Shown one piece after another: positions 18,980-62,920 of a stretch of 64,000 nt of DNA. Under the pieces are notes generated by a model. That model ran no database searches, was not told the origin of the DNA, and saw only the letters and a list, made by a program, of their open reading frames with translations. Location: the NCBI GenBank assembly GCA_000708835.1, contig DF237269.1, positions 39,061 through 103,060 on the forward strand. The letters run 5' to 3'. Position numbers and translations under genes: made by a program. This DNA comes from Klebsormidium nitens (lineage: Eukaryota; Plantae; Klebsormidiophyceae). Position 1 is the first letter of the stretch. The number at the start of each line of letters is the position of its first letter.

Positions 18980-19559
18980 TTTGCCTTCTTCCCTTGACCC
19001 TTTAGCAAGAGACGTTCACAAGCAACAAGTGGCGTCTGAGTGCCACCTCGTTTCCTGATTGCTGCTGTGCAGTGCGAGCTCCCTTTGCTCAATATTAGAA
19101 ATTGCACCCTGCTTGAACACGAGAGAACTCCTCCAACTTCGAACTTCAACTTCAAGTGCAGATTGGGGACAAAATCCTTGGCGCAAATCAATAATTTGGT
19201 CTTAACTTAAACCCAGATGCTGTTTCGCGGTTCCGGAAATTCAGGAAGAAAGCTTTTTGAGGCGGTAGACACTTTCCGGTGTATTTTTTGCAAGACGTTA
19301 ACTCACGAACTGACTACATCGCAACCGTTAAACAAAGCAATTTCTGCCCGGGCCCCGGGGTCGTGTACTTTATAAACAGCCGGTCAGGTCCGTTACGGTT
19401 ACCCCGGGGTTTAGGCGCGTAGAATCTCAGGGTTCGAAAGCAACCAGAAATTATTTTCTGCGCGCCAGCCCTCAAGCTAGTGGCCTGTGCTGAGGTGTCC
19501 TTTCCGCCCTCCCAGAAGCAGCGCCCTGCATTTTGCGCCACCCTTCTTGGGTGCCTGCA
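18980..19559. promoter_or_regulatory. Divergent promoter/5' UTR region shared by EBP1 and the MBD gene
   Basis: The head-to-head ATGs are 580 nt apart. The region contains GGGCCC (site-II-like, about 19350) and ggggtttagg (telo-box-like, about 19407), motifs associated in plants with translation and ribosome-biogenesis genes. The motifs are short and function is untested. Confidence 0.35.
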
Positions 19560-22500
19560 ATGGAAGTGGTTGGCACGGAGCGTGTCTTCCCTCACCTTGA
19601 CTTGCGCGCCTTCACCCATGATGAGCTCCTCCTTGCTGCTCAATTGACTGCCCCCGGCAACACGGCTTCCTGGACTTGGCCCCCCCCTCCGCCTCCTGCG
19701 GCAGGGTTCGTGCTTTCCGCTTCCAGCTTAAAGCAAACGTGCACTCAGGCGGCTGATGTAGCGAGTGACGGAGACGCTAACCTTGTCTTCGACAACGACG
19801 TCCCTTTGCCTGGCGCAAAAAGGGGGAGGATGTCTGGGGGTATGGCGGACCCCCTGGCGATGTTAGCGGATGCGAGTCTTCACGTGACCACGGACGAGGG
19901 GGGGGGTCTGCGAAGGAACATGGGGAGCGCTGCTGACCTCCTGGGAGAGAGCCTGCTTATGCTGAGTCAGCGTGTGGAGCTCGCCCCCCCGGTTAAGAAG
20001 ACAAAAACTGCGCCGAATACCCCTGCGCTGTCCCAGGAGGAGCGTCTCATCGCATCTCTGCATAACACATTGGCGAAGGACCGACACCACGGGGGGGAAG
20101 CGTCTGAGAGCTTGTCGGACGGGTGGAAACCGGACGCTGAGGTCGACTTCCGGAAACCAAAGGGGGGGAAGCCAAAGGCGCCCCCTCCCGTGCGAGGGGC
20201 CCCCGCGCCAGACATGCCCAAGGGCTGGCTGATGGACATTCGCTATCGAGGGAGCGGCAATCGCGTCGACAAGCTGTGGACGTCGCCGGAGGGGGTGCAG
20301 CTGCGCTCAATCAAGGAGTGCGAGAGCTTCCTGCTGGGAAAGGCGCGCCGGCAGCCGGTGACCCCCGTATTGAAGGGCAAGTTTGGGTGCCCCACGTGCG
20401 GACTCCGCTTTGCCGCCGCGCTCGACTTGGGCAACCACATGGCGGCACATTTGGAGCCAGCGCACAAGAGCGCCTCTCCAAAAATGAAGAGCGAGGACGT
20501 TCCAGGTGTGGCGCTAGGGGTCAAGGAGCGGATTGAGGAAGGGAGCGTGCTGCGGGGCGCAAAGAGCGAGGATGACGAAGGAGGGGAGGGGCACGTGAGC
20601 GGGCGGACGGCGCGGTGGCTGCAGCGCGTGGGGCTGTGGAAGGGGCCCGGTGAGGGACTGCTCTTGAACGCTCCCAGTCTAGTTCACGAAGTCAGACACA
20701 GCGAGAATGCACCCCTCTGAGCAACCCTAACAGCAAGGTCTGCTGGCCGTTTGTGTTAGGGCATGCATGTGGCGCAGAGCTGATGCAATTTGGCAGCAAT
20801 AGACTGTGAAACCTCTCGGGAGGCCCATACCCTTTGCCGTTGCTGCCTGGTTCTGGTTGCAACTCTTGCAAAGTGTGAAACACTGGTTTGCTGGTGCCGC
20901 TCTCGATGTTCCTCTCGTAAGAGCTCCCCTCAAGCCATACTGATGACCATGTAGGGGGAAATCGTCTGATTGAGCAAGTCGTTGCTGTGCGGTTCTTATG
21001 AAGATGTCTCTCCCGTGCAGAGACCGGCGATACCCCGCGAGATGTGGAGGAATGTGCAGAGTCCGATGAGAAGGTGTGTCTCTGTGCGTTCCTCTCAAGT
21101 TCAATATGTTCCAGGGTTTGGTTCATGCATTATACTCTGCGTCTCATCTTTATCTTTCGATGACGACAAGACACACTAGCGTCCTCCGTGTGTGGAGGAT
21201 TAACAGGGTACTCGAAGTTGAGAGCAAAGGACACGAGGCCTGAAGGGGCTGATCCCTCTGGCCGGGTGGTGCCTTTAACCTCGTTTGGGGAACAGTTTCT
21301 TGTGGGGCTCAGGGTTGTGAGAACGCTGCACACTGTGCGGAGGGCTTCGTTCTCATACCCCTGTCACTGAGCTAATGTAGCTACAGCAAGGATTATTGAC
21401 AGTCTATCCGCCAGCCTCACAGACGGAGCAGAAGCGGAAGCTCCATGGGGATGCTGCCGCATCCAAGGTTGCGTGTCACCCTTCACTTCAGTGCCTCTGA
21501 CCGCTCCAAGAAAAGCAAACCCTAGTGGCAAGACGCGCGGGGGTGCCTATCATTGTAGGGACCGGAGGTGCATACCCTATGGGGCCCTCTCTAGTCGCTG
21601 TCCGGTCGAGGCCAGCTCCTCCTTCCTCAGTGCCAGAGTTCGTGGGGACTGGGCGATTGCGATATCCTTTCTGCTTTGGAGAAATTTGGCATTTGTCGCT
21701 TTATCTGGTTGCTTCTTTTCTCAACATCATCTAGGATTGTCCCGCTACTCCAAAGCCGCTTTGAGAAGGGTTGCAGAAAGGGTTGTGGATGGGAGGCAGT
21801 GCACATTTGTTGCCTGCAACCAAGCTCTACGGTGCTTGCATAAAGTAGAGCGTTCCTGAGCATGCTTTTTGGGCAGATCAATCTTTTGTTATCCGAGCAG
21901 AGTGTCTGAATTGCTTGTATGACATAACTCTTACCTATTCACCAACTCCTGGCACTTCTGAATAGCCTCTCATGATCTCCTGCAGGGACCAGCCGGAACT
22001 GGTGCTGAGCTCTCCTTGATCTTACTCCTTATCCTTTTCAAATCTTCCTTCTGTGAGGTCGATCCTCTCTGCATTCTAACCTGGGGCAGAACAGGAAAGT
22101 CAGCGGACCTGATCTTAGAGTCATGCACAAATTTCCCCTCCAGATTGACAGGAACATCCTGCCATTCATAAAAACCTAACGTTTGCATCCCCCCGCAGGC
22201 ATCCCACCTCGCCTGGCGCAACTTTGAGGCTCTGCTGCACGACCCCGCCAGCTGGTACGGTCTCGACCTGCTCTCCACCCCCCAGGCTTGTGCCGTCCAG
22301 CGGCTCATCTGCGCACACGGCCGCGAGCGTGCGTGTGCCACGCTCCTCCAGCAGCGCCACCGCATCACCGCTGACCTCATCAACGCCCTCTACCGGCCCA
22401 TCTTGTCCGTGCTGCTATTCATCCTGGACGGGACGAATGACATCAGCGAGGGGAAGCTGGGGACTCTGGCCCTCAAGCGGCGGGTGTGCCGCGCTCTGGG

Positions 22501-24121
22501 GCTGAACCGCAAGGGGGGGGACAATTTCCTCTCTCCGGAGACCCCCTCCCCGCCGGAGTCGCCCCCTCTGAACGCGCTGTCTGAGGATGACGTCAGCAGG
22601 CCCCTGAAAGCTGACGTCAGCAAGCTCCCGGCGCTGATGGAAGCAGAGCGGCCGAGGCGGTTGCACAGAGAAGCAGCACTGGCGCTTCCAGCGCCGGAGT
22701 GGGGGGGTGCACATGAGGAGGGGTCGCCTCCCCCGAAGGAGGAGTGGGGGTTTTGTTCCAGGAAGGAGGAGCCTGTTCACATTGACGCTGAGAGGGCACA
22801 CCACAGGGATGTGAATGGGGCACAGCCAGGCGACGAGTCAGCGGTGGACGAAAAGCTGTCAACATGGGAGTCAGATGCGCTGGGGGTGCCCAAGTGTGAA
22901 CTGGACGTGGTCGAGAGCCCACCTCCCCGGGTGACAAGGAAACGCACGCGCGTCGACACAATCTGGCCCGAGGCGCTGACAGCACAGCTGATGTCAGCGC
23001 ACACGCAGGTTCCGGCGACGATCGAGGCCCAAGTTGCGGCACTGAGCCCGAGGCAGGACCAGAGGGGTGCCGCTGCTGACTGGCACTCAGTGCGAGCGCA
23101 GCCCCCCGGAAAGTTGCGGTGGCTAGGGCCGAGGGCGCATGCGGTTTGGGGGGGGCTGCCACACTCAGCTGAGCGTCCGATCGCAGAGCGTCTGGCGAGC
23201 GGTTCTGTTTTGGGAGCTGCGGACCAGCCCTTGATAGATGGGGATGTAAGGGACTTCCCGTCCAACTCTGGTGGGGGTGAGAAACCCTGCGGCGAGCACC
23301 CCTCCAGGAGAGAAGATGAGCGGGGCGGCGAGGCGGCAGCGGCAGAGCTGCGGGCGCGGGCGGCAGCGCAGCGGAATGAAGCGGAGGAGCTGCGGGAGAT
23401 GATGGAACGGAAGCTGCGGCTGGCGGATAGTTTGGAGGCGCAGGCGGCGGCGCTAGAGACCAAGTGCCACGTGGATGGCGAGGGGAAAGAGCGTCCAGAT
23501 CTGCGGCGGGCTAAATCCGCCGGTATGTGTGCGGCAGAGGAGGGAAAGGGACGTTTGGACGTTGGGAAAGGGGAGCCGGACGTTTCAGGCTCCGGGATGG
23601 CTGGCCTGGATGACCAAATGGCGGGTTCGGACGTATGGAAGGTACGTGCGGACACGGGGAAAGCTGGTGCGGACGCCGAAATGGCTGAGCTGGCGGGTCT
23701 GGATGCTGAATTGGCGAGCGCCAAAGCTGTTCGGACGTGTCCGGACGGTTTGGGGACACAACTGGAGGACGGGAGCCGGGGCAAGATGGACGCTTTCTGC
23801 TTGGATTCGGACACATTGTGGAGGGATGCGGACGCAACTGCCGGGGTTTCGGACGCGAAGGCAGCTCCTGAAGGGGGCTCGTGGGTGAATGGCAGTGTCA
23901 GGAAAGTGATGATGGCTCATGTGTGGAGTGGTTGGGGTTCGGAGGGTTTTAGCAAGAAGGGCTCTGCGGGGGACTTTGCTGGGGAGAGTGCGAATGATGA
24001 GGGAATGGAGACGGAGCCCTGCTTTGAAGGGGCCCAAGAGAAGCGGTTGAGAGGCTTTCCTTCCTTGGGTGGGGTATCGGACGAGAAGAGAGACGTTAGG
24101 GGCTTGGGAGCGAACTGTTGA
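19560..24121 (+). CDS. Methyl-CpG-binding-domain protein with a C2H2 zinc finger, an unassigned helical domain and a long acidic low-complexity tail (~1068 aa)
   Basis: Proposed exons 19560-20649, 21387-21467, 21735-21831, 21986-22001 and 22199-24121 are phase-consistent (3207 nt). MBD-like segment DMPKGWLMDIRYRGSGNRVDKLWTSPEGVQLRSIKECESFL at about 20211-20335. C2H2 CPTC-x12-H-x3-H at 20388-20450. The N-terminal FPHLDLRAFTHDELLL resembles the N-terminus of plant MBD8-type proteins as I recall it. The middle exons are less certain. Confidence 0.75.
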
Positions 24122-33204: not shown

Positions 33205-34363
33205 GCTCAGCTCCCTCTCCAACACCAAACCGGTCCAAACGAGCTAGAGAGGCGAGGGAGACGTGCGGCCGCCAGCAGTAGCGCGGCCGCTGCCCAAGAG
33301 TGGTAATGGATTACGAACCCTGGATAGGTTCAGAAAAGCGCAGAGCGGCTGCTTTCTATATTGCAATGGCCGCTGACAGCAGCAAGCTTTCGATTAGAAC
33401 AAGTACAGTGGAGCGGTGAGTATATTCTCGGAATCTTCTAGAAGGGTGAGCAGGGGGGCCAATCGCGTCGCATCGTCTTCATGATGTTCTTGAGTTGATT
33501 CATCGTCTTCCGACTCTTCACCGTTGTGAACAGAGATCTCGGTTTGGCGGAGAAGATCGAAAAGGGTTTTCTTGATGATGCTGAGCCGCTCCTGTGCTGC
33601 AGCACTCTGTTTCTTGCCAATGGCTGCCGTAGAGGGGTTCTGCTAGCAGCAGCTGCGAGCTGTCTGGCCTGTGTGGTGCCAACAGCTCAGGAGCAGAAAT
33701 TTCCTCCCCTGCTGTTGCGATGGAGGCGCTTGGGGTTCGCGCGAGCTTCAGCAGGTACTTTTGACGAAGTGTTCAAAAGCTTTTTGTCTTTGTGGTTGCA
33801 AGTGTGTACTCGCCACACTCTTCATCATTTTGGCACCGGCCACAATGCCCTGCTGTAGACGTCAGCATGGTGCTCTCCTTGCATTCCTTTACCACTGTCG
33901 TGCAGTTGTAGACCTCACAATGTGGAAGCCCTCAGGTTGGTGTCAAATGTAGCATTTGTCAACTGTGGCTTTCAGCCTTGTTGATACCTTTTAGTTGTTA
34001 CAAATGTGCCGTCCTGGTTACTCAACTGCTCTTCACATTGCTTAGTGTCATTCTTCCGTACTCTCTCCAGATCTGAGTCCAAAGTTGGCTTTTTGACAGG
34101 TGCGACGGAGCAGGCTTCACAGTGACCACTTGCACTAGACCAAATGCCAGGTTCCAAACGGTAAGCTGTTGGTCTGCTATTCCAGTTTCATGCCAGCTTC
34201 GTTAACCTCGTGTGCTGTGGTTGTCTTTGTCGATCAAATGCTCTTGACAATGGTATAGCCCGTATCCCACCACTCTGGCTAGAAACGGCGCTTGACATCG
34301 GGGTTTCTTTGATGAATGTGCTACGGGAATTGCGCAACTCAATGGTCAGAATTTCGTGCGCAG

Positions 34364-37300
34364 GCGTCTTACCCTCTTCCGGGAAGGTTAGGCCTGGGAG
34401 AGGCGCTCCCAGTTGCAAGCAGGAAGGCATTCTTGGGCAGGTCGGGACTGTCTCAGGGGAGGTTTCCTTCCTGGAAGAATTCGCGTGGGTAAGAGTTCTC
34501 CCATATCTCAAGTGGTGGAATTCTGTACAGTCTCCCTCAGTGGGTCCACAAATTCCATACACCAGCATAAAGCAGGTTCTAGATCCCTAACGATCTACGG
34601 TCCGCAATGAATGAGGGTTTGCTCAGGAAGAATTTCTCGAAGGCCTAATTTCATATGAGTTCAAAGTCACCCAAGTTCGAAGAAATAATATCTCTCGAAG
34701 TAAGAGAATTCGAAGAAAGAGAATTTTAGCACGATCACGCGCAATACAAATTATGGTCAAGCAAAGCCCCGCTTTGGCTTGATGATGTCGCAGGTGCTTA
34801 CGTTCAGAAGCTCTGTGTCCAGGTTAGCTGACACTGATCCTGAAAACCCGCAGAACACTTTCAGACTCGTACGTACTATCTTACCTCTGATTGTTTTCAG
34901 GGTGGGAACTCAGAATTCAAGTCTTTCAAAAAGATGAAAGAAGAAAGGACAAACTGCGAATCTGCGCATTTTTTTCCCTCATTGCCTCCTTTCCCTTCTT
35001 CTCAGCGGTGTCCGGGCCGAGTCAGACTTGCCCCACAACAACGGCATCTCCCAACCCATCACAGTCCCTGCAAGCAGCACCCCTCCCAAATCCAAAAAAA
35101 GCGCCGACAAACGCGCCGAAGCAAACGTGCGTCACGCCGGAAGCGAGGGCTCCGAGTCCCGCCAAAATCTCCGCTCCGAGGAACCGTCGAGCTCGGACGA
35201 TGAATCCGGCATGCCTGCGAGCGTGCACTTGGCATCACGAGCGGCAGCGGTAGCTTTTGCGGAGGCCGCGGCACGTAATGCCGCGGCAGGGGGGGAGCAT
35301 GTTGCCGACGAGATGCCGGTGGACGACGATTTCTTACCGGGGAACACGACATTGGGGGCGCACGAGGGGGACTTTGCGGTGCGGCTGGCGAATGCGAGCG
35401 TTGCGGGGCTGACGGTGATTACCGTGCATGGAGTGGACCAGGAGAATTTGCTGGCGGACGTGTCGAGCACGTTGAGCTCAGCGGGGCTACGGTGAGGGGC
35501 TGGAGACTATCATTTCTAAGTAGACTTGGTAGGTACATATGGGCATTTAAGGTGCTTGGAAGCTTCCAACCATAACCAACCTGGTATGCGTAAGGCAGTT
35601 GGGAGAGCAGCCCCAATGTTTGAGGAAAGCACATGGTGAGGTTTTCTGTGGTGAAGGATCTAGCCGGTTCCATGTAGTGAGACGGAAACTTTACCTATGC
35701 CATTCTGGGGCCCTCCACCAAATTGCGCGCTGTGCTATATACTTGTTTCAACAGTAGGGCCCTGAAGCAGTTTTGAAGAATCTTTGGTTGAGATATGATA
35801 TTTGACCAGATTATAGCAGCACATCAAGGGATAAGCTTCCAGCCTATCGTTCCCCACCCATCGCACCATGTACCTTACATTCAATCAGTGGCATTTGCAC
35901 AGCTAGACCACCTTGAAACGGGGCTAGATCACATTGACAGCACCTGATACTCCCTTGTTCTGTCCCAACTAGTGTGGAGAGTGCCCGGGCCGACATGGAA
36001 GAGGACTCCAACCTGATCCTCGACATTTTTGTGGTGCGCGATCTGGAGACGCAGAAGGAGCTTTCCCAGGAGCGCTTTTCCGAGATCCAGGACCGCATCC
36101 TCACAAAGCTGGCGGTGCGGCGCAACCGCATGAAGCCTGTGTTGGGGGACGACCCCCGCCTCTGGGAACAGGTGCAACTTCACAAGTACACGGACTGCTT
36201 TGCTGGGTATTTGGAGGCAGTGGACCAATGTTTGATGCTGGTTGTGACTGAACGTGGATCCCTTTTCAAAGAGCATTGATTTCGTCAATCAGATGGAGCA
36301 CTAAGCTTTTTGATGCCAAGAATGAGTTGATGACAGTCAATGAGCATTGAGACAGAGTGTGTCAGCAGTGCTCTGCTGACTGCATGTATACACTTGCTTT
36401 CTGTCGGTCAATCGAGCTGAGAAATCCTGCACTGCCCATATTTCGTGCGGGTGAACCACTCTGTTAACGCGCTCTGTCCAATATCCTACCTTCTCACCTC
36501 AAGCTCAGAGAAAAGACTCTTAAGAACATTCCCCTCACGCAGGTCAACTTCCTGATTGCGACACTGGACAAGGTGGTCGTCAAGCACGCGGGCACGGAGG
36601 TGCACGAGGCGGTGCAGTATCTGATCCGCGGCTTCGACGGGCTGCGCGAGAAGGAGGACATCCGCAAGCGCGCAGAGCTGCTGCGCTACATCACGAACAT
36701 GGACTGCCCTACGGTGAGGCGATAGGCTCTGGGGTTGGTTCATGGCTTACGCGTTCAGGCCAAGGGCTTATATGGTGCTGTAAGAAAGAGCAAAGCACGC
36801 AGAGCTGCCTCGCTACATCTTGAAGGTGGACGGGTGCCGGGGTTGGCAGTGCTTCAGACCGCTGGGAGGTCATAGCTTATGCTGACTCGCCTTAAGAGAC
36901 TTTGTCAAGCCAGCAGAGTAGGGGGTGCAAGGGGTGGTCTGCAAGTTGGGGAACTTCCCGGTTAATCTCAAACACTCAAAGCACAAAATACTCCATGGTG
37001 AGCCCGCAGTTTGAGTGACGGGTACATCCCCCCCTGCTTGAGGCACAGGCCTCGTCAGTATCATCTGAAAAAGAGCATGACAGCACGATTCCCCACGGCT
37101 CTCTTTCTCAACACTCAACACACCTTCGTCATGCCCCATCCTCTTCGCTTCGCGCCTCAACATGCTCATCTCAACACACCCTTACTTCTTCCTGGTGACC
37201 ACACAAATGCCTATGCTCGAGCTAATAGCTAATTTAAGCCTTCCTTTCCATTGACCGCAGCTGAACGCCGTCGTGCGCAGCCTCTACAGCTACTCCTCCC

Positions 37301-40300
37301 TCCTCAACGCTGTTTCTCTGTCCTCCTTCCCTATCCTTCTCATATAGCATCCCCCCTGAGTCATGTGCCAACCTACTTCCCCTTCTCACTTTATGTTCCT
37401 CACTACACCCAATGCTACACCAATCGGTCCCCTCACTCCATTCGCTGCACAGCTGACGGCCATTGTATGAGTCTACTAAATCTATGTTTCCCTCGCTCCT
37501 CAACTCAGTTCTTCGTTCTCCTCCCCTCAGTCTGTCCAGGTGCTTTCCCCCCTTGAATCACACGCCAGCCTCGATCCACTCCCCCTCCTCACAATGTCGT
37601 CTCCTTGCACTCAAATCTCCTGCAGTACCGTAGTATAATCCTCACATCGTTCCCTGCGCAGGTGACGGCCGTCGTGCGCGTTCTCTACATCTACTCCTCG
37701 CTCCTCAACGTCGCCGACGAGGCCCACAAGCACCGCCTGCGCCGCGAGGAGATCTGGCTGTCCCGCGGGGCGACCCCCACGTGGGAGGGCTCCTTCGAGG
37801 GCACGCTCCGTGAATTCCGGAACGCCGACATCGGCCCCAAAGAGCTGCAGCTGCTGTTGAACCGCCTGGAGTACAGCCCGGTGTTTACGGCGCATCCGAC
37901 GGAGGCGCGGCGGCGCGAGATCCTGACGACGCTCCACCGGATCTTCTACATGTGCGAGAGGCGGGAGGACAACCGGCTGAGCCCCGCGCAGAAGAGCAAG
38001 GTGGAGCAGGAAATTGAGGCCGAGGTGAGGGGGTGGGGACATGTTTTTTGACATTTTTTGCATCTGAATTTAGGTATAGATGTTGTTAACACCTGACCCT
38101 GGGCTGCGAAGCGTGATTGCGTTTGTGAGCAGATGAGAGAAAGGCAGACTCACGTCAAGGTTCACTTCTCCCAAGCTCTACATTCGAAAGAGCCCCCTGG
38201 GGGTCTATCAGAAGAACTTACGAAGTATAGCTTTGGGGTTCGAAATATTCGAGCCCATCAGTTGTGGTGCTCGAAGATGGGTCCATCAACAGTCAAGCGT
38301 AGTGTAGCTGTATGGAAACCCGTCAGGGTAGTCGTGTGTCCTGTGTCTACTTTTGTCTGCGGGCAAGTGCATTTACACCTGCGCATATGGTCTGGCGAAG
38401 CTCTCCCCACGACTTGAACTTTCGAGCTCGACAATATGACATATGCAGCCTTATCGTGGTCACTTCCGCCATTAGAGAGCAATTCAGGTTTCCTGTTCCT
38501 GTGTTTGTTCTGCTTATTCGTGGTCAAGCGTCGAGTCGCATTGACGAGCTCCTGCAACCTGCGCCATTGTGTTTGTTACGAAATACGAACCTTCTAAAAA
38601 CCCGATTTTTAAGTCGGACGCTCAAATCTGCAGGTCTACGTGCTGTGGCGCACAGACGAGATGCGGCAGCAGAAGCCGACGGTGCTGGAAGAGATCCAGG
38701 CGGGGCTGGACTACTTCCGCTACTCGCTCTTCGAAGCAGTCTGCACCACGTACCGGTATGCAGAGAACAGCCTGGAGGTGAGCGTCCGAGATCATCTGCG
38801 CTTCTTCAAGCTCGTTGGAGGACTCACTGGAAAGTCCATTGAGCATATAGAGCTATTCTTACGCGGGCCCCTTGTAGGGGCACATTGTCATCGCACACAA
38901 TGCAGAGTAATGTGTTTCGATTTGAAAGATGAAGTTGAGCAACTTGAGCCTTACAGTCCGTTCAACGATCTCGAGTCGGCCCCTAGACGTCTGAATACGA
39001 ACCTTCAGTGAAACGTCGATGCAAGTCCTGATAGGACACTCGTCAGACGTCTCATTAGCCGTAAAATGCCGACGTGAAGAGAAAGTCCTCACAGCACTTC
39101 GCTCAAACGTCCTGATTTGATCAACACGTGGCGAGTTTACAATTTACATGTTCGCTATCATTGCAGCACGTCTACCCAAAGGCTGGCGTGACGCTGCCTA
39201 GCTTCATCAAGTTCGGCTCCTGGATCGGAGGCGACCGGGATGGCAACCCGTTTGGTGAGGGACTTTGCCGCTTTTAACGTTTTTCCTTAGGCGCACACAG
39301 TCTGTATTCCTACATGAGCAGGCGACCAAGCTACTTGGTATGTCAAACCCCTTTCTGAGATTGTGGTTACGGTACCTCCCCTTGAAGGGCGAGGGTTGGA
39401 GCGGACAGGTTGCGGTCAGATTAGGAAAAGAGGGAGAATGGCGCTTTCCGGCTGACCGAGAAAAGTTCCCCCTCTGCTCCATGACCCGCGACTCTGTGTG
39501 CAATCTTTCAAAGATGACCGAGGCAGCCACGCTCCCTCAGAGCCGCTTCGTCCACGCTTAAACTTCGCTTGTTCGTCAACACCCCTGAGTTCTGATACCC
39601 TAAACCCAGCTTATAATAACCATCATTTTGAATTCCACTCCCAACACGGCTCATCGAACCTCCCACCATTTCCCGCAGTCCTCCCAAAGACAACCGAACC
39701 TCCAGAGCCGCCTGGTGCTCACGGAGTCCATCCGGTACTCATGTAACGACTAATTTTCCAAAGTTGAGCCAAAACTTTGACCGAGAAGCTCTATCGTGCG
39801 ACGGGACCCTCTCTGACCCGCCACATTTCTGTGCAGTTCTGCCCAAGACCACCGAAACCGCGGCGCTCCTCCAGAGCCGGCTGGTGCTCGCGGAGTACAT
39901 CCGGCGTGCGCGCGCGTGCCAGGACATGCTGACGCACTCCGTCCTCATCTGCAAAGTCAACCAGGAGCTGCTGGACAGCATCGCAGAGGACAAGAAACTG
40001 ATGGCCCGGATCCCCGCGCTGAACAAGGATATTGAATTATATGCGCAAGAGCCGTACCGGCTGAAGCTGCGCATGATCCGGCACCGCTTGGAGCAGAACC
40101 TGCGGATCATAAACAAGCGGCTCAAGGCCATTGGACTGGAGGATGAGGTGAGGGGCGGCGGACGAAGATTCGATAAGCAGCGTGCCTGAGGCTATCATCG
40201 TCACGCCTCCTTATCATTGTTGAACTCCTCGAGCTGCGAATCGCCTGCGTCTAACGACGGACTGGGAAAGGAAGCATCGGGAATGCTGTTACTCACATCG

Positions 40301-43300
40301 ATTGGGTTCAGACCAGAGCGGTAACAGTTGGACCGCGGATTTTGCGCGTGGGCGCTTGTACTTGCGTGGGTCAGGTTGGGAGCAGTTGTGTTTATTTTAA
40401 TTCATCTTTTATTTGGGTTTACCCTAGACGGATCGAAGCTCTGGTCCGTCCCCTGTCCGTCAAATAAAAATCAATGGCCATCATACCACGAAAGCATGCC
40501 AGGGTAATTGCTGACCACTTCCGAGGCCTGCCCGTTATCAGGACCACCCTATTGAAAGGACATAAAGCTTCAGAACGGATGGTCTGACAAAGTTCGCGAA
40601 CCTCGAAGACTCATCCCTTTCCTTCCCATCCCAACCCCGTCCCCATGGACCTCCCCAATCTGTCTCAATTTTTGTAGTGGTGCCTCAACCAAGTCTTTCA
40701 TGGTCTCAGATGCTGATTGACATCGAGTTCAATTTAGACGAGATCCTCCATGCAACCCCTTACATACAAAATTCCTGATTTATGAGTTTTTTCCTGGTTT
40801 CAGATGCTGATTGACATCGAGTACAACTTGGACGAGATCCCCGGCGTCGACCCCCGCGACGACTGCTACTCCGACGAGGCCGCCTTCATTTCGGACCTCC
40901 GCCTCATTGACGCGTCCCTGCGCGACCGGGGGGATGCCAGGCTGGCGGACGCCAAACTCAAAGACCTGGTAGGTTACTTTGAAAACCTTCGAGTAATATC
41001 TAGTTTAATATGGACTTACAGTTGCTCCGCTTAGCCATTCTAAGCTAGCAAGCTTAGGGGCTTGACCCTTGTCCCGTCGCTGTTCTGAAGATAGGGGGCT
41101 GAAGCTCAAGAGCGTCCCTCCATTTGGTTCTGTCCGACGATAAGAAAGTCGTGGTAGCCGCAAAAGGCGGCTCTCTCTTGTACTTTGACCATCCACAAAA
41201 TCAGTCTGAGATCGAGGACTACCCAAAGAAAGACGGATGGTGAATCTTTGGGGACCAGCCACAGTTTATAGCTCTTTGCGGGAAGATTTTTGTCAGCTTT
41301 TCAAAGTCCCGGAGCATAGTTCCAGATCTTGGAACGTGCGATTGACGATGGAAGGCATCCAACGGCTGAGGATTGCGGACCACAGTGCGGAACGTAAGAG
41401 ACACTGAATAGGCAGGTTTGACGAGAATCGCTGTAAACGGGACCCTTTTTCTCCAGGTCCGCATGGCGGAGACCTTCGGCTTCTACCTCATGACGTTGGA
41501 TGTCCGGCAAGAGTCGGATGTGCACACGGACGCCGTGTCCGAAGTGGTGGGCGAGTCGGTCCTCGGCTTGTGCGCCAACTACAAGGACCTCAACGTCGCG
41601 GAGCGCATCGAGCTGCTGTCAGAAGCCATTGCGTCGCCGCCACCCGTCGAGCGTATTGAGGTGAGCTCGCCCGCGACTTGCTTCTGTCTTTCCGTTGTCC
41701 TCTTGTAGTCCGGTTCATTGGGTTGCCTGCGCCTTTGTGTTGTTTCATAATCATTGACTTGAATATGAAAGCGAGCCCTTACTATCAAGCGCAGCGGAGG
41801 TAAGCTGGTGGTATTCTGAGTGAGGACACCCGCCCAGTGAACTTTGTGTTTATCGCCATTGCACGCGACTGGTGCTTCGGATCTCCTCGCCCGGAAACTA
41901 AAGCAAGCATATGGGTTTCTGAAGAAACTTTGATCCGGCTTCTTTTGTCTAGAGTACTCCGGGTTACCCTGAGAGAGGGCACCTTCACGCGTTCACTTTC
42001 AGCATGGTCACTTCAAACTGAGGGTCCTTCCTTGGGTCTGAAGGATCTCAAGATCATGAAGAAACAACCGCCTTTCCCTTCCATTTCAGGAGATCTTGGC
42101 CAAGCTGAGCGAGAGCACTCGCCAGGTGGTGGAAGTGTTCATCGCGATCGCTAACATCATCGAGGCCATCAGCCCAGGGGCGGTCTCGTCCTACGTCATC
42201 TCCATGACGCGCAATGCCAGCCACGTCCTCGAGGTGAGCTCAGAGTGACGTCACTGGTCGTCAGTCTCGCTTTCCTGTGGCGAAACGAATTGTTGATCGG
42301 TCCTATATTGCACTCGCCCTTTGGAACCGGCGGCCACTTCTAAGAAGGGAACCTGTTGGATGTAGGGTCTGAGGGTGTGATAACGATCGTGCAGATTAAG
42401 AGAAGGGGACGTCTTGAGAGTCACTGCCTTCAAATTTGATCTGACGGTCGTTAGAACCGTATGACATCAGCATTGGTAGACTGCCAGACTAAATAACATC
42501 GGCGGACTGGTGCGTTTCGTCCAGACTGAATGACGTCAGCATCGGCAGATTGGGTCGTTTGGTCCCAGGTGTTGTTCTTTGCATGGCTGTCCTGCCGCAA
42601 ACTCAGCAACTCGCAATTCAGCAGTGTATCGACATTGTGACCCAGCACATTTTTACTTCCAAACCCAGTCTCAAAACCTGGGTCTGAATTAACCCGTAAC
42701 TTGTCCGTTCTCCTCAGGTTATGTTCTTGGCGTGGCTGTCGTGCCGCAACATCGTGGGGCGCACTGCCGAGGGCAAGTGGTACTCCCAGATTACCGTAGC
42801 ACCGCTCTTTGAGACTATCCCGGATCTAGAGGTTATGCCGCAGGCGCTAACCCAGATCCTGACCAACGACACGTACAAGAGTCTGCTGGCTGCGTCTGGG
42901 AACATTCAGGAGGTGAGTCTGTCACTTATGCAATTTTTGGGTTACGGTAATTGTGAACCTTGGCATGCTTTGTTGGGGTCTGGACAAGGGTAAGATCCAA
43001 TCCGAGACTGCCGAGACTTTGATCAACCCCCTGACAACCGGGCTCCAGAACAGGGCGTCTGTAATTGCGATTCCAGCCAAAGGTACGGGAACTTCCGGCA
43101 CTCAACTGTGACCAAGAAGACAGCTTAAACGTTCCGCTTGAGAGTCTTCCAGGGCGGAGGGCTTCTACAAGCCTTGTCCAACTTCGTGATCGTATGCGCT
43201 TTGGATGGCCAGGAAATGGATTAAAGGCCTGTGCTACGCTCATTCGCCGGGCCCGTTTCCGAAAGCCTTTCTGGGAGACGATCCTGCGTGTTGCATCGTT

Positions 43301-46300
43301 TATATTGTGCTGTCACTCTCCCTGAAATTTTTTTTGGTCACTGGGACACGTGCTTTCACTGCTTCAAACTTAACAATGACTTCTGGCTGTTCTCCTCCCC
43401 AGGTCATGCTCGGCTACTCGGACTCGTGCAAAGACGGCGGCATCACCGCCAGTGCCTTCAACCTCTACAAAGCCCAGCAGCTGCTGCGGCAGATCAGCAG
43501 CGATGCGGGGGTCCAGTGCCGGATCTTCCACGGCCGGGGGGGTACGGTTGGCAGGGGCGGCGGCCCCACGCACGAGAGCATTTTGTCGCAACCCCCTGGA
43601 AGCGTCCAGGGGACCATTAAATTCACGGAGCAGGGGGAGGTCATAACTTATCGGTATGGGAACAGCGAGACGGCGACGTATGAGCTGACGGTGAGCGAAG
43701 CTTTTTGTACTTGTGACCGAGCCTGTCAAAACGTTTGTTGAGATCTTGTCCTGCGCGTCAGTAAAGACAAAGAGCTGAGATTACGTTTAGTCGAGAAAGT
43801 CTGTCTTGGGGCGGACGAGAAAGCGGCTATTTCTCTTGGCAACAAACGCTTTCTGCTATCACGAGTTGCTCCACAGCATAAACGCTCGCAGAAGTAGCAC
43901 GGTGGTCGGTCATTTAGCAGCAGGCAGCACCCCTGCTCTCCTGCTTCATCCCCGGAAGCGGAACAGTAGCAATGACATCATTTTGCTGTCACAATCACCA
44001 CCACTTAAGTTCCTTGAAACTCGTTGATTGCAGGTGGGTATTACGGGTCTGATGAAAGCGAGCCATCCGGCGACTAGGTCGATTCCAGACGACAATCCCA
44101 AGGTGACCATTGCACCCTTGCTTGCCTCGTTCTTAACCTTACCAGCAGAGCCGCTCTTTCCAGTTCCAGGTTCCCGTGCATGATTTCCAGAAGTCAGCCG
44201 AACCGTAAACCTGGCTTCTGGATTCTCCAGTGTTACTGGGAGTTGTTCTCTTGGAGCAAATCCACAATCCGACCTTTGGAGGCGCAGTCCATACGTGCCA
44301 CATACAACTTTAAGGGCTGCAAAGTAGAGTTGGAGTTTCTCAATCTGTTAACTTCCAAACCGCTGAACAAAGCTCCCCTAGTAGTGTTAAACTTGCTCGT
44401 GAGTCATGCGTTGCTCTAACCTTGACTCTTGCGTGCAATCCGCAGTACATCGACATCATGAACGAGCTTGCCAAGGAGGGCGAGCGGGCGTACCGAGAGC
44501 TGACGGACGCCACCGAGGGCTTCTACGACTATTTTTATGTGAGTCCCTCCTCTGCACAGCTTTAGGGTTGCGTCTAAAAACGCTTTTTGAGCCTTCTGAA
44601 GCGGACAACCTAGCTATAACCCGCTTTGAAATGCCTTTGCTTCTCGTTTTGATGGCGTACCAGCTGCTTTGTGACCAGAGCAGCTTTGTCACTACCCTCC
44701 TGACCGGGCAATCGTCTGCTGCAACGGAAGCAACAGGCTGGTATTGAGATGGGCCTCTTTCTGCGAACAAAAGCTGCTGGCAATCTGCACTATATGTACT
44801 CCTGGATAGATACCCCTGCCTCTTTCTCCTCTCCAATGCCCGACACGGTCGATGTTTAGCAAAGCGACTAACGCCCTGCCCACTGACGCCCTCTTCGAGA
44901 TTTGAAACTGGCATTCTTCCAGCGCCCTCTCATGCTCTCATTGGAGAGGCAAACACTCCTGCATTAATACCCCGCAGGAGGGCACGATTGTATTCGTCAT
45001 TGCGTTCATGAACACAACTATTTCTTGACTCAATCGATGCTCCTCTTCAAGTGGCAAGAGAGTTCCTCAGATAGTGGTCAAGTTTGAGTCTCAAATCCTG
45101 ACACCCCGCTATCTCCTTCGCCTTACCGCAGGAGGGCACGATCGTGAACGAGATCGGGATGATGAACATGGGCAGCCGCCCCGCGCGGCGCAAGGTCGCA
45201 GTCCGCGACAAAACGTCCCTCCGCGCGATCCCGTGGGTGTTCGGCTGGGCGCAGTCGCGGCACACGCTCCCGGCGTGGTATGGCGTCGGCAGCGGGATTG
45301 CGGCGTACACGCAGGGGGATCCCTCGAAGATGGCGGAGCTGCAGGAGATGTACCAGAACTGGCCTTTCTTCCGGACGTTCCTGAGCAACGTCCGGATGAG
45401 CCTGCAGAAGGCGTCCATGGAGATCGCGCGCGAGTACGCCAGGTGAGGGGTTGCTCTTCTAATCTTGTACTTTTCTTTCCGTAAGTTGAAGGGAGCTCTT
45501 AGGTCAGGGTACCTCGGTTTGGACATCGCCAAGGGTAATAGTTGGGACGAAAATTGTGGCGGAGAGAGTATGAAGTATGAAGCAATTGGACAGTTGCGGG
45601 AAACAAGACGTTCAAAGTGGGGGTGCTTGCGGGTCAAACGCCAGACAGATCAGGACGAGCGACTGAATGGTGGTGTCACAGTGCGGAGTAAACGGTTGGG
45701 CCTTCCAGGCGCCCTCCAAATAGCAATCCAAGGCGAAGCATACCACCGCGATTATGGGAGCTTGCTAATCTGCATTCCGACGGACCGACGTTGTCTGCCG
45801 CTTCAGAAGCAGATGAATTCAGCTGTCAAAGCATTCACGAGCGGGTTTAAGCATCCGACACAAATGTGGCCTGCTTCCCCGGGGCGCATTTCCGCTGCCC
45901 ACATCAGCAAGCGCAAGTGACGGGTAACTCAGACTGTCACTTGTTCCTGCAGGCTCGTGTCGGACCGCATCACGGAGAAGCTAGTGTTTGGTTTGGTGGA
46001 AAAAGAGTTCCAGCAGACGATCGCCCAGATTTTGGCGGTCTCCCAAATAACCCGGCTGCTGGAAGACAACCGCACGCTGGAGATGTCCATCGACGCCCGG
46101 CGGCGGTACCTGGATCCGCTCAACCACATACAGGTTAGCGCTTACCCTGAATTGCTGATATGGGATGGTGTGCTTAGCGGCAAAGAAGGCCTTTAGTGCA
46201 CACAATTCAGCAACTTAAGCCAGACGTGTTGCGTCAAATCATACACCCTGCAGATGATCCCGCAGTCGATGACCGGAGTTTATGTGCTATTCTGAAGCTT

Positions 46301-46490
46301 CTGGTCTGCGAATTGTGCATGCTAACAAGCCAAGCTTCGATTCATGCTAACAACCAAGCTCGACCGGTAGGTGATCTTGCTTGGCCGCCGCCGCGACTCG
46401 TCCTTGTCTGAGGAAGAACGCCAGATGTGGGTCGGGCCCCTTCTTCGGTCCATCAAAGCCATCTCTAGCAACATGCGGAACACTGGTTAG
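34364..46490 (+). CDS. ppc: Phosphoenolpyruvate carboxylase with an N-terminal ACT domain (>1170 aa; true start not resolved)
   Basis: Exons: 34364-34488 (tentative), 35006-35491, 35973-36171, 36543-36713, 37662-38024, 38634-38777, 39167-39254, 39837-40147, 40804-40968, 41457-41660, 42090-42233, 42718-42912, 43403-43690, 44034-44102, 44446-44538, 45132-45442, 45953-46133, 46371-46490. All phases are consistent from 35006 onward. PEPC motifs: [98 protein letters not shown], terminal MRNTG*. Confidence 0.95.
35410..36115 (+). other. ACT domain (ACR/GlnD-type) encoded across two exons at the PEPC N-terminus
   Basis: [28 protein letters not shown]|[46 protein letters not shown] fits the ACT pattern T.I.V.G.D..GLL..I...L...GL.V..A.....D.F.V.D. 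Confidence 0.8.
36790..36831 (+). repeat. Intronic degenerate copy of the 3' part of PEPC exon 36543-36713
   Basis: gcaaagcacgcagagctgcctcgctacatcttgaaggtggac versus exon gcaagcgcgcagagctgctgcgctacatcacgaacatggac (36664-36704). Confidence 0.85.
39666..39735 (+). repeat. Intronic degenerate copy of the acceptor and 5' part of PEPC exon 39837-40147
   Basis: ccatttcccgcag|tcctcccaaagacaaccgaa..cctccagagccgcctggtgctcacggagtccatccgg versus ccacatttctgtgcag|ttctgcccaagaccaccgaaaccgcggcgctcctccagagccggctggtgctcgcggagtacatccgg. The copy has a frameshifting deletion. Confidence 0.9.
40706..40747 (+). repeat. Intronic degenerate copy of the acceptor and 5' part of PEPC exon 40804-40968
   Basis: tcag|atgctgattgacatcgagttcaatttagacgagatcc versus tcag|atgctgattgacatcgagtacaacttggacgagatcc. 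Confidence 0.92.
42565..42601 (+). repeat. Intronic degenerate copy of the acceptor and 5' part of PEPC exon 42718-42912
   Basis: ccag|gtgttgttctttgcatggctgtcctgccgcaa versus tcag|gttatgttcttggcgtggctgtcgtgccgcaa. Confidence 0.85.
44968..44991 (+). repeat. Intronic short copy of the acceptor and 5' end of PEPC exon 45132-45442
   Basis: taccccgcag|gagggcacgattgt versus taccgcag|gagggcacgatcgt. Confidence 0.7.
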
Positions 46491-60239: not shown

Positions 60240-61422
60240 TGTCTTTGCTGGCGGCGGCGGCTGGAAGCACTCCTGAGAATTCTGCGAGCCACAAAACAAG
60301 CGCTTTTCGCTAAACGGTTGCCGAAAAAGGAACGAACTTTATCGCTAGCCCCTGCTGGGATTTGACCAAAGCCTTGACATCAGAAAGGGGGAAGGAACCA
60401 GCGGGTATCATTCTCTCACTGGGAAATTCCCATGTGCTGCAGAGTGGCGCTATTAACTAACTACACTGTAGTATACAGCTACTACTAGGTAGCTTCCTTC
60501 TGGGCACCGGAGGACAGCCCGAGCAGGTTCCAACTGTCTTTGCATGCGCGTTCCCCATGCAGTTGAGCGGTCGAAGTGTCACGACTCAGAACTCAGAGTC
60601 AAGCTTTCGAAGGGCGACCGGGGACTAGTACTCGCTGGGTGGTATCTGACTGAATGATTGTTGGACCTTTTAGCAGGTTTTGGAGTGCTCTGATTGGTCG
60701 CCGGAGGCTTTGGAAACTTCCAGATGTCGCTAAAAGGAAAAGTGGACAGCAAAGCCAATCAAAACTCGGCACTTGTGGTGCGGATGGAGCAGTACCTGAC
60801 AAGTGGAGTAAGTATCGACCGTCCGAGCAATCGGCGGCGCCAAGCAGGTGTCAGATACAAGAGATCTCCAGATCTGACGGTACTACACCTATGTCTTTGG
60901 GCAGCCGCCCGATCCTTGACTTCGAGAATGAACGTCCCAGATGACGACAAACTTATTTTGGTTTGCTAATTGAGACGGTCTATCTCTGATCTCTGCGTTA
61001 CTTTCTGAACCGTCGGATTCGTAAAGCAGCTCGCGCGCGGCGCCACCAAGAAGCCGGGAGTATTGAAATGCACAATGGGGGAGTTCTACGCGGTCCATGG
61101 GCCACGTGGAAGGTCAAGTGACCCTCACCTTCCATCAAAAGCGCGTTCCTCCGGTTTGAATTTGCCGAGCTGGCATGGCGTGGAACGTGGCCCGTTCATT
61201 GCAGGACTGGGCGCCATGGCTGAAAAGGAAAGCATGATGCTGAGCTGTGTTTGCGGCAGAGTCTGAAAGCAGAGGTGAAAGCACATTGAGAGCTCCTGAC
61301 TTGGTGACAGTTGGTAAAGTTCTTATGCTAATGCAGGGTGCACGAGCCTGCTTCTTATGTTCTCAGCTGGTGTAAGCAAAACGCTCGCGAGCTCTGCGGT
61401 TGGACTACGCTCAGCTGTGAAA

Positions 61423-62920
61423 ATGGCTCTCCTCCGCGTACTGTCACAAAGTCGACAAGGTAGCAGCTCGCTACTGGGGTCCATGGGGTTGAGGATGTTC
61501 TCGGGGCGTGCCTCAGCCAGAGTAGAACCTGGCCCTGCTGGGTGGTATGAACACAAGCGGATATCAAACCTTGGCAAGTTGGAAGATCTGATGTATGACG
61601 GGCGTGTGCAGTGGGTTTTCCTGGGGATGCCTGGGGTCGGGAAGGGCACGTACGCAAGCAGAGTTGCAGATCTGATGCAGGTGCCTCATATATCGGCGGG
61701 AGACTTGGTCAGGGAAGAGCTGAGGAAAGGGTCAGCATATGCTCAGGAGATGCAGGAGGTGATACAGGCGGGTCAGCTGTTGCCAGACAGCATGATCCTA
61801 GATCTGATAAAGGCGAGGTTGCACCAGGGACAGCAGATGGGGGAGCGGGGTTTCATTCTGGATGGGTTTCCGAGGACTGCTCTCCAGGCGGCAGCTCTGG
61901 AAGACATAGCGGAGATTACGCTGGCGCTCAATCTGCGTCTAAGGGAGGACGTTTTGGTGCAGAAGTGCCTCGGCAGGCGGACGTGCGGTCAGTGCGGAAA
62001 AGGTTTCAATCTCGCGGATATCAACGTTGCAGGGGTCAATGGAGCCCCCCGGATAGTGATGCCTCCCATGAGTCCTCCCTCCGCCTGTATAGGCAAGATG
62101 GTAATGAGATCAGATGACACAGAGGAGATCGTAAGGAAGCGGCTGGCGGTGTACAAGGAGCAGGTAAGACGGCAAGACGGCCTGTCACATTATTATCATG
62201 CCCTTTACTCTGCATGTTTTGTGTTCAACATGGTAATGCTTGAAAGTATGCTGACATCTGCTTGGGTGTAGCCAGGGTGGGGGTAGTTACGCAAAGGCAG
62301 CAATTGCATCTCATTTTGAGTTGCTGGCAACTTTGTGATGTGCTTTGTTTATCATCATTAATGGTGTGGTTTCCCTGTCTTTGGGGCAGGCTTGAAATGG
62401 ATTTGTCTTTGCTCAGTTACTCGTATTTTGCTCATTCGATTCAAAACGATGTCGCAAGTCAAAACGTGATCTCGTTCATAAATGACTGAGGGTCAGGAGC
62501 TAGTCACGGTGCATTTAAAGGATCTTGGTATCTGCATCTTCAGCTTTTACTGCTCCTGAAGCCAGAACCTGCGCATGACATGGTTCGGAAGCAGCGATTG
62601 TGCTTGCTACTTCTCTGTTAAGTTTTTTGGACTCCTGTCCTGAGTGCCCTCTAGAGTCGTCCGTAGATAGCGTATGGGTCTAGGCCGCAGCCGCATCCTA
62701 CTTTGCTCCGGTGCTTGATTCCTGTTGTCATTGTAATCAGATGGTCCGGTTCTATGCTTTACAGAGCCAACCAGTGGAGGACTTCTACCGGCGAAGAGAC
62801 GTTCTTTTAGATTTTGACGTTGGTGGTGGTATACCGGAGACATGGCCCCGGTTGTTGAAGGCTTTGTACGATGAGAACCGGGAAAGGGAGTTACTAGAAC
62901 CTGAGCCAAGAGCTGCCTGA
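61423..62920 (+). CDS. ADK: Adenylate kinase, plant organellar type (Arabidopsis ADK6/7-like), with an N-terminal targeting peptide
   Basis: Exons 61423-62163 and 62765-62920. Motifs: VQWVFLGMPGVGKGTYASR (P-loop), HISAGDLVREE, GFILDGFPRT, KCLGRRTCGQCGKGFNLADI, RSDDTEEIVRKRL, GGIPETWPRLL. The start could instead be the upstream in-frame ATG at 61357. Confidence 0.93.

Follow-up and report, generated by a model that had tools for sequence, protein, structure and literature searches.

A phosphoenolpyruvate carboxylase with an N-terminal ACT-like domain, encoded in Klebsormidium nitens and conserved in the green lineage

Does a gene of Klebsormidium nitens (Klebsormidiophyceae) join phosphoenolpyruvate carboxylase (PEPC) to a sensor-type ACT domain, and what kind of PEPC would such a fusion be? 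The question was raised by a 64,000-nucleotide stretch of contig DF237269.1 (assembly GCA_000708835.1, positions 39,061 to 103,060 of the forward strand; hereafter the window, in whose numbering coordinates are given), in which the initial annotation placed a PEPC gene beginning at 35006, with an ACT domain in front of the enzyme. The regulation of PEPC is a textbook case of allostery and phosphorylation, and to our knowledge no PEPC of an ACT-regulated kind has been characterised. Plant PEPCs have been described as two clades, the plant-type (PTPC) and the bacterial-type (BTPC) (PMC8566536).

In the present study, we examined the structure and the transcripts of this gene, its relatives in sequence collections, and the possible role of its N-terminal domain. 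The locus encodes a nuclear, intron-rich, expressed PEPC of gammaproteobacterial ancestry. Its N-terminal domain is supported by profiles, fold and conservation as a single ACR-type ACT-like domain, and the fusion belongs to a conserved clade of green-lineage PEPCs.

Structure and transcripts of the gene

The PEPC gene lies on the plus strand and comprises 20 exons from the ATG at 33720 to the stop codon ending at 46490, corresponding to 1250 amino acid residues. It is intron-rich, with GC-rich exons and 19 spliceosomal introns. The exons, obtained from joints in spliced contigs and from a splice model, are as follows.

33550..33754, + strand: exon 1, containing the 5' UTR and the ATG at 33720 (MEALGV...); its 5' end is put at about 33550 or further upstream
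34100..34160, + strand: exon 2, part of the presequence; contig joints in four runs
34364..34488, + strand: exon 3, part of the presequence; joints 34160/34364 and 34488/35006, GT..AG
35006..35491, + strand: exon 4, beginning with a low-complexity stretch of Ser, Ala, and acidic residues; the ACT-like domain starts at about 35364, its first half (b0, b1, a1) being located here
35973..36171, + strand: exon 5, the other half of the ACT-like domain (b2, b3, a2) to about 36129, then the linker; joints 35491/35973 and 36171/36543
36543..36713, + strand: exon 6, start of the PEPC domain; the Pfam PEPcase match of orthologue P0002 begins at the equivalent position
37662-38024, 38634-38777, 39167-39254, + strand: exons 7-9, contig joints; TAHPTE among the PEPC motifs carried
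39837-40147, 40804-40968, 41457-41660, 42090-42233, 42718-42912, + strand: exons 10-14, from GT-AG ends, frame, exon conservation in the relative L001 and orthologue alignment
43403-43690, 44034-44102, 44446-44538, 45132-45442, 45953-46133, 46371-46490 (stop included), + strand: exons 15-20, from GT-AG ends, frame, L001 and orthologues

The splice model was assembled from open frames and GT-AG sites and was then checked against public sequencing reads. The window was contained in 20 public runs, many of them with exactly one third of the sampled words, which is the share of the exons. The runs were taken as RNA by guess; their contigs lack eight introns and therefore derive from spliced transcripts. 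Reads from four runs of four studies were aligned to 34000-39300, and each run gave a single contig of 3.5-4.3 kb with zero mismatches. Eight GT..AG joints, located inside these single contigs, were identical across the four studies. The contigs skip the introns 34161-34363, 34489-35005, 35492-35972, 36172-36542, 36714-37661, 38025-38633, and 38778-39166. The joint 35491/35973 reads in frame as ...SSAGLR/VESARAD..., and the end of exon 5 before the joint 36171/36543 reads ...DDPRLWEQ; the in-frame splicing of the ACT exons into PEPC at these two joints, as proposed initially, is thus borne out by the contigs.

The beginning of the gene had to be revised. Position 35006, formerly regarded as the gene start, is an internal acceptor site, and the contigs run on upstream in frame through three additional 5' exons. 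The loose 5' ends of the contigs (70-202 nt) map to 33722-33751; thus, exon 1 ends at 33754. Once the exons are joined, the PEPC frame continues open upstream to an in-frame stop, after which 33720 is the first ATG. A start at the ATG at 35211 was ruled out by the same upstream extension. At the other end, exon 10 is confirmed by the loose 3' end of the contigs, which is an exact match to the sequence at 39837. The exons beyond 39254 are based on GT-AG ends, frame, near-gapless orthologue alignment, and the length of the whole contig, which is 4323 nt compared with 3914 nt for the summed exons plus a 3' UTR. The 69-nt exon 44034-44102 is needed for both frame and homology; the joint 43653/44385 was rejected, as this exon restores homology. 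The donors 36033 and 36114 scored better in crude splice scoring but are unused by the RNA contigs. The full-length K. nitens protein was absent from the protein collections searched, in which only P0001, a mispredicted fragment of 175 residues from a relative, was found.

The introns of the gene also hold decayed tandem copies of the adjacent exon end, with 77-92% identity, at 36793-36831, 37256-37309, 39699-39735, 40696-40746, and 44972-45014, and also at about 37452 and about 42530. Several of the copies include the acceptor site (CGCAG, TTTCAG, or CCGCAG), at a distance of 94-401 nt from the genuine acceptor; the RNA contigs use the true splice sites only and none of the duplicated acceptors. 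The relative L001 has extra copies of its own of the exon 7 end (10613-10670 and 10793-10826 in its contig). These copies look like recurrent small tandem duplications over exon-intron borders in this lineage. In the case of the 69-nt exon, its last nine bases (44094-44102, AATCCCAAG, with GT next) recur as AATCCGCAG at 44437-44445, just before the next exon; this repeat may be a trace of the origin of the intron, or may be due to chance.

The ACT-like domain and the enzyme behind it

The deduced protein begins with a presequence (residues 1-190) that has a net charge of +8 in its first 80 residues and is rich in Ala, Ser, Gly, and Arg, and then in Ser and acidic residues. The ACT-like domain (residues 194-290) is interrupted by the intron 35492-35972. 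At the DNA level it occupies 35364-35491 and 35973-36129; the initial annotation had assigned it to 35410-36115. Residues 291-302, ending in the above-mentioned DDPRLWEQ, form a linker, and residues 303-1250 are PEPC with complete catalytic motifs.

For the identification of the N-terminal domain, Pfam and structure prediction were applied to orthologues, and the K. nitens domain was assigned via a hidden Markov model (HMM) of the orthologues. Each of the 18 orthologue segments, scanned singly, matched ACT families of Pfam: PF22754 (bHLH ACT-like) and PF24931 (ACT_ACR9_3rd) in 18 of 18, PF13291 in 15, and PF01842 in 14 (best 1e-10). The ACR-specific families PF24931, PF24914, and PF24926 were all matched, as were ACR10_N and ACR9_C in some segments, and P0157, the closest relative, reached 29 bits on PF01842, above the curated cut-off of 27. 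An HMM built from the 18 orthologue N-terminal segments alone matched the spliced K. nitens protein at residues 194-305 with 78.4 bits (E 2e-26, one sequence), and this match crosses the splice junction without a break. Against solved structures, the domain profile matched the ACT domain of Rel/RelA (2.5e-6). For the Marchantia paleacea domain, AF2 gave a model (pLDDT 77.6) with the order b-b-a-b-b-a; the best Foldseek matches of this model are the ACT-like domains of GL3 and maize R (9c7n, 9c7o; TM by target 0.72), and next come the SerA, SerB2, and large glutamate dehydrogenase ACT domains. The aligned domains carry the ACR/GlnD signature (DN, T, LL-D, V..A, D-F). The initial assignment of an ACR/GlnD-type ACT domain is therefore upheld by the Pfam families, the orthologue HMM, and the fold of the Marchantia model.

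AF2 modelling of the full-length Marchantia orthologue gave disorder over residues 1-138 and an ACT domain spanning residues 141-232; after a linker of four residues, the first PEPC helix starts at residue 237. By this model, the ACT-like domain, nearly without a linker, would be joined almost rigidly to PEPC. The presequence is unconserved among orthologues, most of which have a basic presequence rich in Ser, Thr, and Ala; it is weakly conserved in the close relative L001, which also begins with MEALGV and shows 47% identity in exon 3. From its composition, this fast-evolving basic presequence is probably an organelle transit peptide.

The identity of the catalytic part is clear. Orthologue P0002 matches PF00311 (PEPcase) over positions 1-919 of 919 (E 1.6e-269), and the K. 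nitens protein aligns with P0002 at 62% over residues 194-1250. In the rest of the PEPC part (exons 10-20, ending in MRNTG), alignment to solved PEPCs gave matches of exon 18 with the plant and E. coli enzymes at about 1e-21 to 1e-19. The motifs DxRQES, GYSDSxKDxG, FHGRGGxxGRGG, and LRAIPWxFxWxQxR are all present in the spliced protein and are invariant in the clade alignment. The phosphorylation motif SIDAQLR, already reported as lacking, occurs nowhere in the spliced protein. Of the residues considered for the aspartate/malate inhibitor site (E. coli Lys773, Arg832, Arg587, and Asn881), Lys773 corresponds to the K of SLQKAS by the alignment coordinates of 1FIY, and the Arg581/587 loop (GRGG..GRGG) and Asn881 (in RNTG) are visibly present. 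The placement of Arg832 is tentative, as exon 19 alone had no match in PDB.

The orthologous gene on L001, a 93-kb metagenome contig of a close relative, allowed us to examine selection on the fusion. Between L001 and the window, the exons alone align (76-89% nucleotide identity); the introns are unalignable, and the exon boundaries coincide. With dS of 0.5-2.6 over the regions compared, dN/dS was 0.049 for the first half of the ACT-like domain (35355-35489), 0.10 for the second half with the linker, 0.12 for the pre-ACT part of exon 4, and 0.01-0.11 for the PEPC exons. By these ratios, the ACT exons are under purifying selection.

Distribution and ancestry of the ACT-bearing PEPCs

With exon 7 as the query, a search of 1.84 billion representatives yielded a moss protein of 1180 residues, in which the PEPC part starts at about residue 229. 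Word-based searches with this moss protein and a clade profile then gave 21 clusters of 945-1215 residues with the same N-terminal domain. Members were found in mosses (two copies in Ceratodon, Physcomitrium XP_024391121, and Sphagnum), liverworts (Marchantia paleacea, Riccia, and Calypogeia), the lycophyte Diphasiastrum, and algae (Spirogloea, Mesotaenium, Chlorokybus, Mesostigma, Pterosperma, and other marine transcriptomes). Profile bit scores were 1411-1998 inside the clade versus 1232 or less for the best bacterial PEPCs. Neither BTPC nor any member from seed plants, ferns, or core chlorophytes was present among the 120 best matches of the clade profile.

In the maximum-likelihood tree, 20 ACT-bearing proteins formed one clade (SH-aLRT 100). 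Branching within it follows the species tree, with prasinophyte-like members first, then Chlorokybus and Mesostigma, K. nitens, Zygnematophyceae, and land plants. Gammaproteobacterial PEPCs are the sister group (support 90). By this tree, the moss gene's proposed "land-plant" transfer from bacteria (PMC3493653) is moved to an earlier date, before the streptophyte algae split.

Some published models of the orthologues look faulty in or next to the ACT domain. Of the two Spirogloea models, P0159 has an insert of 28 residues and P0161 lacks half of the domain; P0163 from Mesotaenium is without the linker and about 90 residues of PEPC, and its alignment skips K. nitens residues 744-831. These are probably errors of the splice models. 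Without relation to the ACT class is P0069 (894 residues), a PEPC-like protein with a truncated C-terminus and a 208-residue N-terminal extension that is rich in His, Ser, and Leu and has no Pfam match.

A published CD-search table lists three kinds of PEPC genes in each of Marchantia polymorpha, Anthoceros, and Spirogloea: PTPC (pfam00311), BTPC (PRK00009 from residue 19, like AtPPC4), and a "PEPcase superfamily" protein of about 1150-1213 residues, in which the match begins at about residue 360-410 (PMC8784020). The third kind, which was left aside in that study under this name, comprises PTQ42341, AANG007402, SM000126S26288, SM000312S11989, and Pp3c12_10250 of Physcomitrella; SM000126S26288 and SM000312S11989 are the above-mentioned P0159 and P0161, respectively. 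The BTPC and ACT-class genes are paired as PTQ41595 and PTQ42341, AANG012509 and AANG007402, and SM000031S11583 and SM000126S26288. As the gene coexists with both PTPC and BTPC in the same species, ACT-PEPC is, on the separation from BTPC given by this table, a third class beside them in Marchantia, Anthoceros, and Spirogloea.

A PEPCase of Physcomitrella has also been listed as a transfer from Gamma-proteobacteria with no Arabidopsis orthologue, in a paper whose main text does not mention an ACT domain (Yue et al. 2012, PMC3493653). Our search of the literature with PEPC or PEPcase plus ACT domain and with the gene identifiers found no description of an ACT-PEPC fusion in searchable papers, subscription papers being outside its scope. 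The suggestion that the architecture is undescribed thus holds for the searchable literature, in which the fusion is uncharacterised; it is not, however, peculiar to this genome, since the class is old and conserved, its members are found in databases, and one of them has been noticed in part, as a gene transfer.

Possible role of the ACT-like domain

In oligomeric ACT-regulated enzymes, paired ACT domains form effector sites. By analogy, the four ACT domains of the PEPC tetramer would form pairs between subunits, which is the usual behaviour of ACT domains. A small ligand at the interface, most plausibly Asp, Glu, or Gln, would tune this pairing and thereby shift the enzyme between states that are more or less active or inhibitor-sensitive. 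The ACT domain would in this way replace the N-terminal phosphoserine of plant-type PEPC.

Several points weigh against ligand sensing and the wider proposal built on it. The canonical ACT loop is D/N-R-P-G-LL, and the streptophyte members, including K. nitens, have DQ(E/D)NLL (DQENLL in K. nitens), in which the glycine is missing. In the K. nitens lineage, A replaces the D of the conserved DN motif, and the nearest solved structures are ligand-free dimerisation domains. Because of these three points, we place the reading that the ACT domain senses a ligand and regulates PEPC at about even odds (a probability of roughly 0.5). In addition, the ACT assignment of the K. nitens domain is transitive, through orthologues; ligand sensing is argued from the general behaviour of ACT domains and of tetrameric PEPC, and organelle targeting from the composition of the presequence alone. 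We put forward only tentatively the combined picture that the class was acquired once from a gammaproteobacterium before the split of streptophytes and prasinophytes, was lost later in seed plants, and has its activity set by an amino acid on its own ACT domain inside an organelle.

Possible, although we regard it as less likely, is that the ACT-like domain is a ligand-free structural pairing module, which would stabilise or modify the dimeric or tetrameric enzyme or bring about hetero-oligomers. The top structural matches to GL3 and maize R, the match of PF22754 to all of the orthologue segments, a topology that is b-b-a-b-b-a and not b-a-b-b-a-b, and the loss of the loop glycine in streptophyte members would fit such a module. 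However, the prasinophyte-like members and Mesostigma retain the N/D-R/K-x-G-LL loop, ACR-specific and general ACT profiles match as strongly as PF22754, and the amino-acid-binding ACT domains of SerA and SerB2 are also among the fold matches; moreover, bacterial PEPC tetramerises without any ACT module. Docking of the enzyme to another protein, either a plastid nitrogen-assimilation enzyme or another PEPC class, is suggested by the ACR-type signature, by the presequence resembling a transit peptide, and by the occurrence of PTPC and BTPC in the same species. It has analogies in ACR11, which is reported to partner GS2 and Fd-GOGAT, and in the Class-2 complexes of PTPC and BTPC. The four-residue linker in the Marchantia model, however, fits intramolecular coupling better than a free docking module, and we consider docking unlikely.

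It is hardly credible that the fusion is an artefact, whether by read-through of neighbouring genes, a wrong gene model, or bacterial contamination, and no observation was made in favour of this. The joints shared by the four studies lie within single contigs, the domain itself spans a splice junction, and the fusion recurs in at least 20 other taxa; the 19 spliceosomal introns and the alignment of exons but not introns with L001 also argue against it. Contamination as the source of the PEPC gene is dismissed, since its neighbours are of an ordinary eukaryotic nuclear kind. The open reading frames at 3438-4526, 19533-20717, and 61357-62268 match tubulin folding cofactor D, a methyl-CpG-binding domain (weakly, with 21.2 bits where the cut-off is 21), and adenylate kinase, respectively. 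The part of the window with the highest GC content (0.63) contains a further open frame of 572 residues (22403-24118), which has no Pfam match and is overlapped by open frames on the opposite strand.

Compared with the two-clade view of plant PEPCs, the present results add a conserved third clade of the green lineage with a sensor-type domain of its own. If the ACT domain binds a metabolite, it would show the way in which anaplerotic carbon flow was linked to nitrogen status in early green algae and bryophytes. If the ligand is an amino acid, the fusion would be a hard-wired link between carbon skeletons and nitrogen that replaces the kinase-based control of plant-type PEPC; such a compact, kinase-independent regulatory module could be of use in engineering. 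Orthologues are present in Marchantia and Physcomitrium, in which the question can be put to a direct test.

Comparison with known systems

The closest known enzymes are the gammaproteobacterial PEPCs (Thiohalobacter, Sulfurivermis, and E. coli 1FIY), which show 46-50% identity to the whole K. nitens PEPC part; the alignment of 963 columns has only about 10 gap columns over 956 residues. They share with it the RNTG C-terminus, the catalytic motifs, Lys773, and the lack of an N-terminal phosphoserine motif. The bacterial enzymes, however, are 930-950 residues long and begin at the PEPC domain, whereas the K. nitens protein has about 300 extra N-terminal residues and its gene 19 introns.

The BTPC of plants (AtPPC4, At1g68750) is similar in its (R/K)NTG C-terminus, the absence of SIDAQLR, and its many exons; Sanchez and Cejudo are said to have described in 2003 that BTPC genes have many exons. 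Orthology to AtPPC4, a PEPC domain starting at the N-terminus, and a large internal disordered insert, which are hallmarks of BTPC, were not found in the K. nitens protein. In agreement with the initial annotation, by which plant BTPCs lack an ACT domain, BTPC has no N-terminal domain and its CDD match to PRK00009 begins at residue 19 (PMC8784020), whereas the K. nitens protein has such a domain.

PTPC belongs to the same enzyme family and is distinguished by its QNTG end and the phosphoserine of SIDAQLR; the K. nitens protein ends in RNTG and has the ACT-like domain in the place of the phosphoserine. In PTPC, the N-terminal appendage modulates feedback inhibition.

Among ACT proteins, the ACRs and the C-terminal ACT domains of GlnD share with the K. 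nitens domain the signature x-DN-x6-T-x-(V/I)-x5-(LL)-D...A...T...D-x-F. The ACRs, however, are stand-alone proteins with 2-4 ACT repeats and a DRPGLL loop, whereas K. nitens has a single copy fused to an enzyme, with DQENLL in the loop. The ACT-like domains of the bHLH proteins GL3 and R have the same b-b-a-b-b-a order as the M. paleacea model, and PF22754, the bHLH ACT-like family, is matched by all 18 orthologue segments; the domains of GL3 and R are C-terminal in transcription factors and have a role in dimerisation, and the sequence identity is only 14-19%. Fusion of ACT to a metabolic enzyme, as in the K. nitens PEPC, is seen in SerA 3-phosphoglycerate dehydrogenase, SerB2, and aspartate kinase. 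In these enzymes, the ACT domain is usually C-terminal and its ligand is known, whereas in the K. nitens PEPC the domain is N-terminal.

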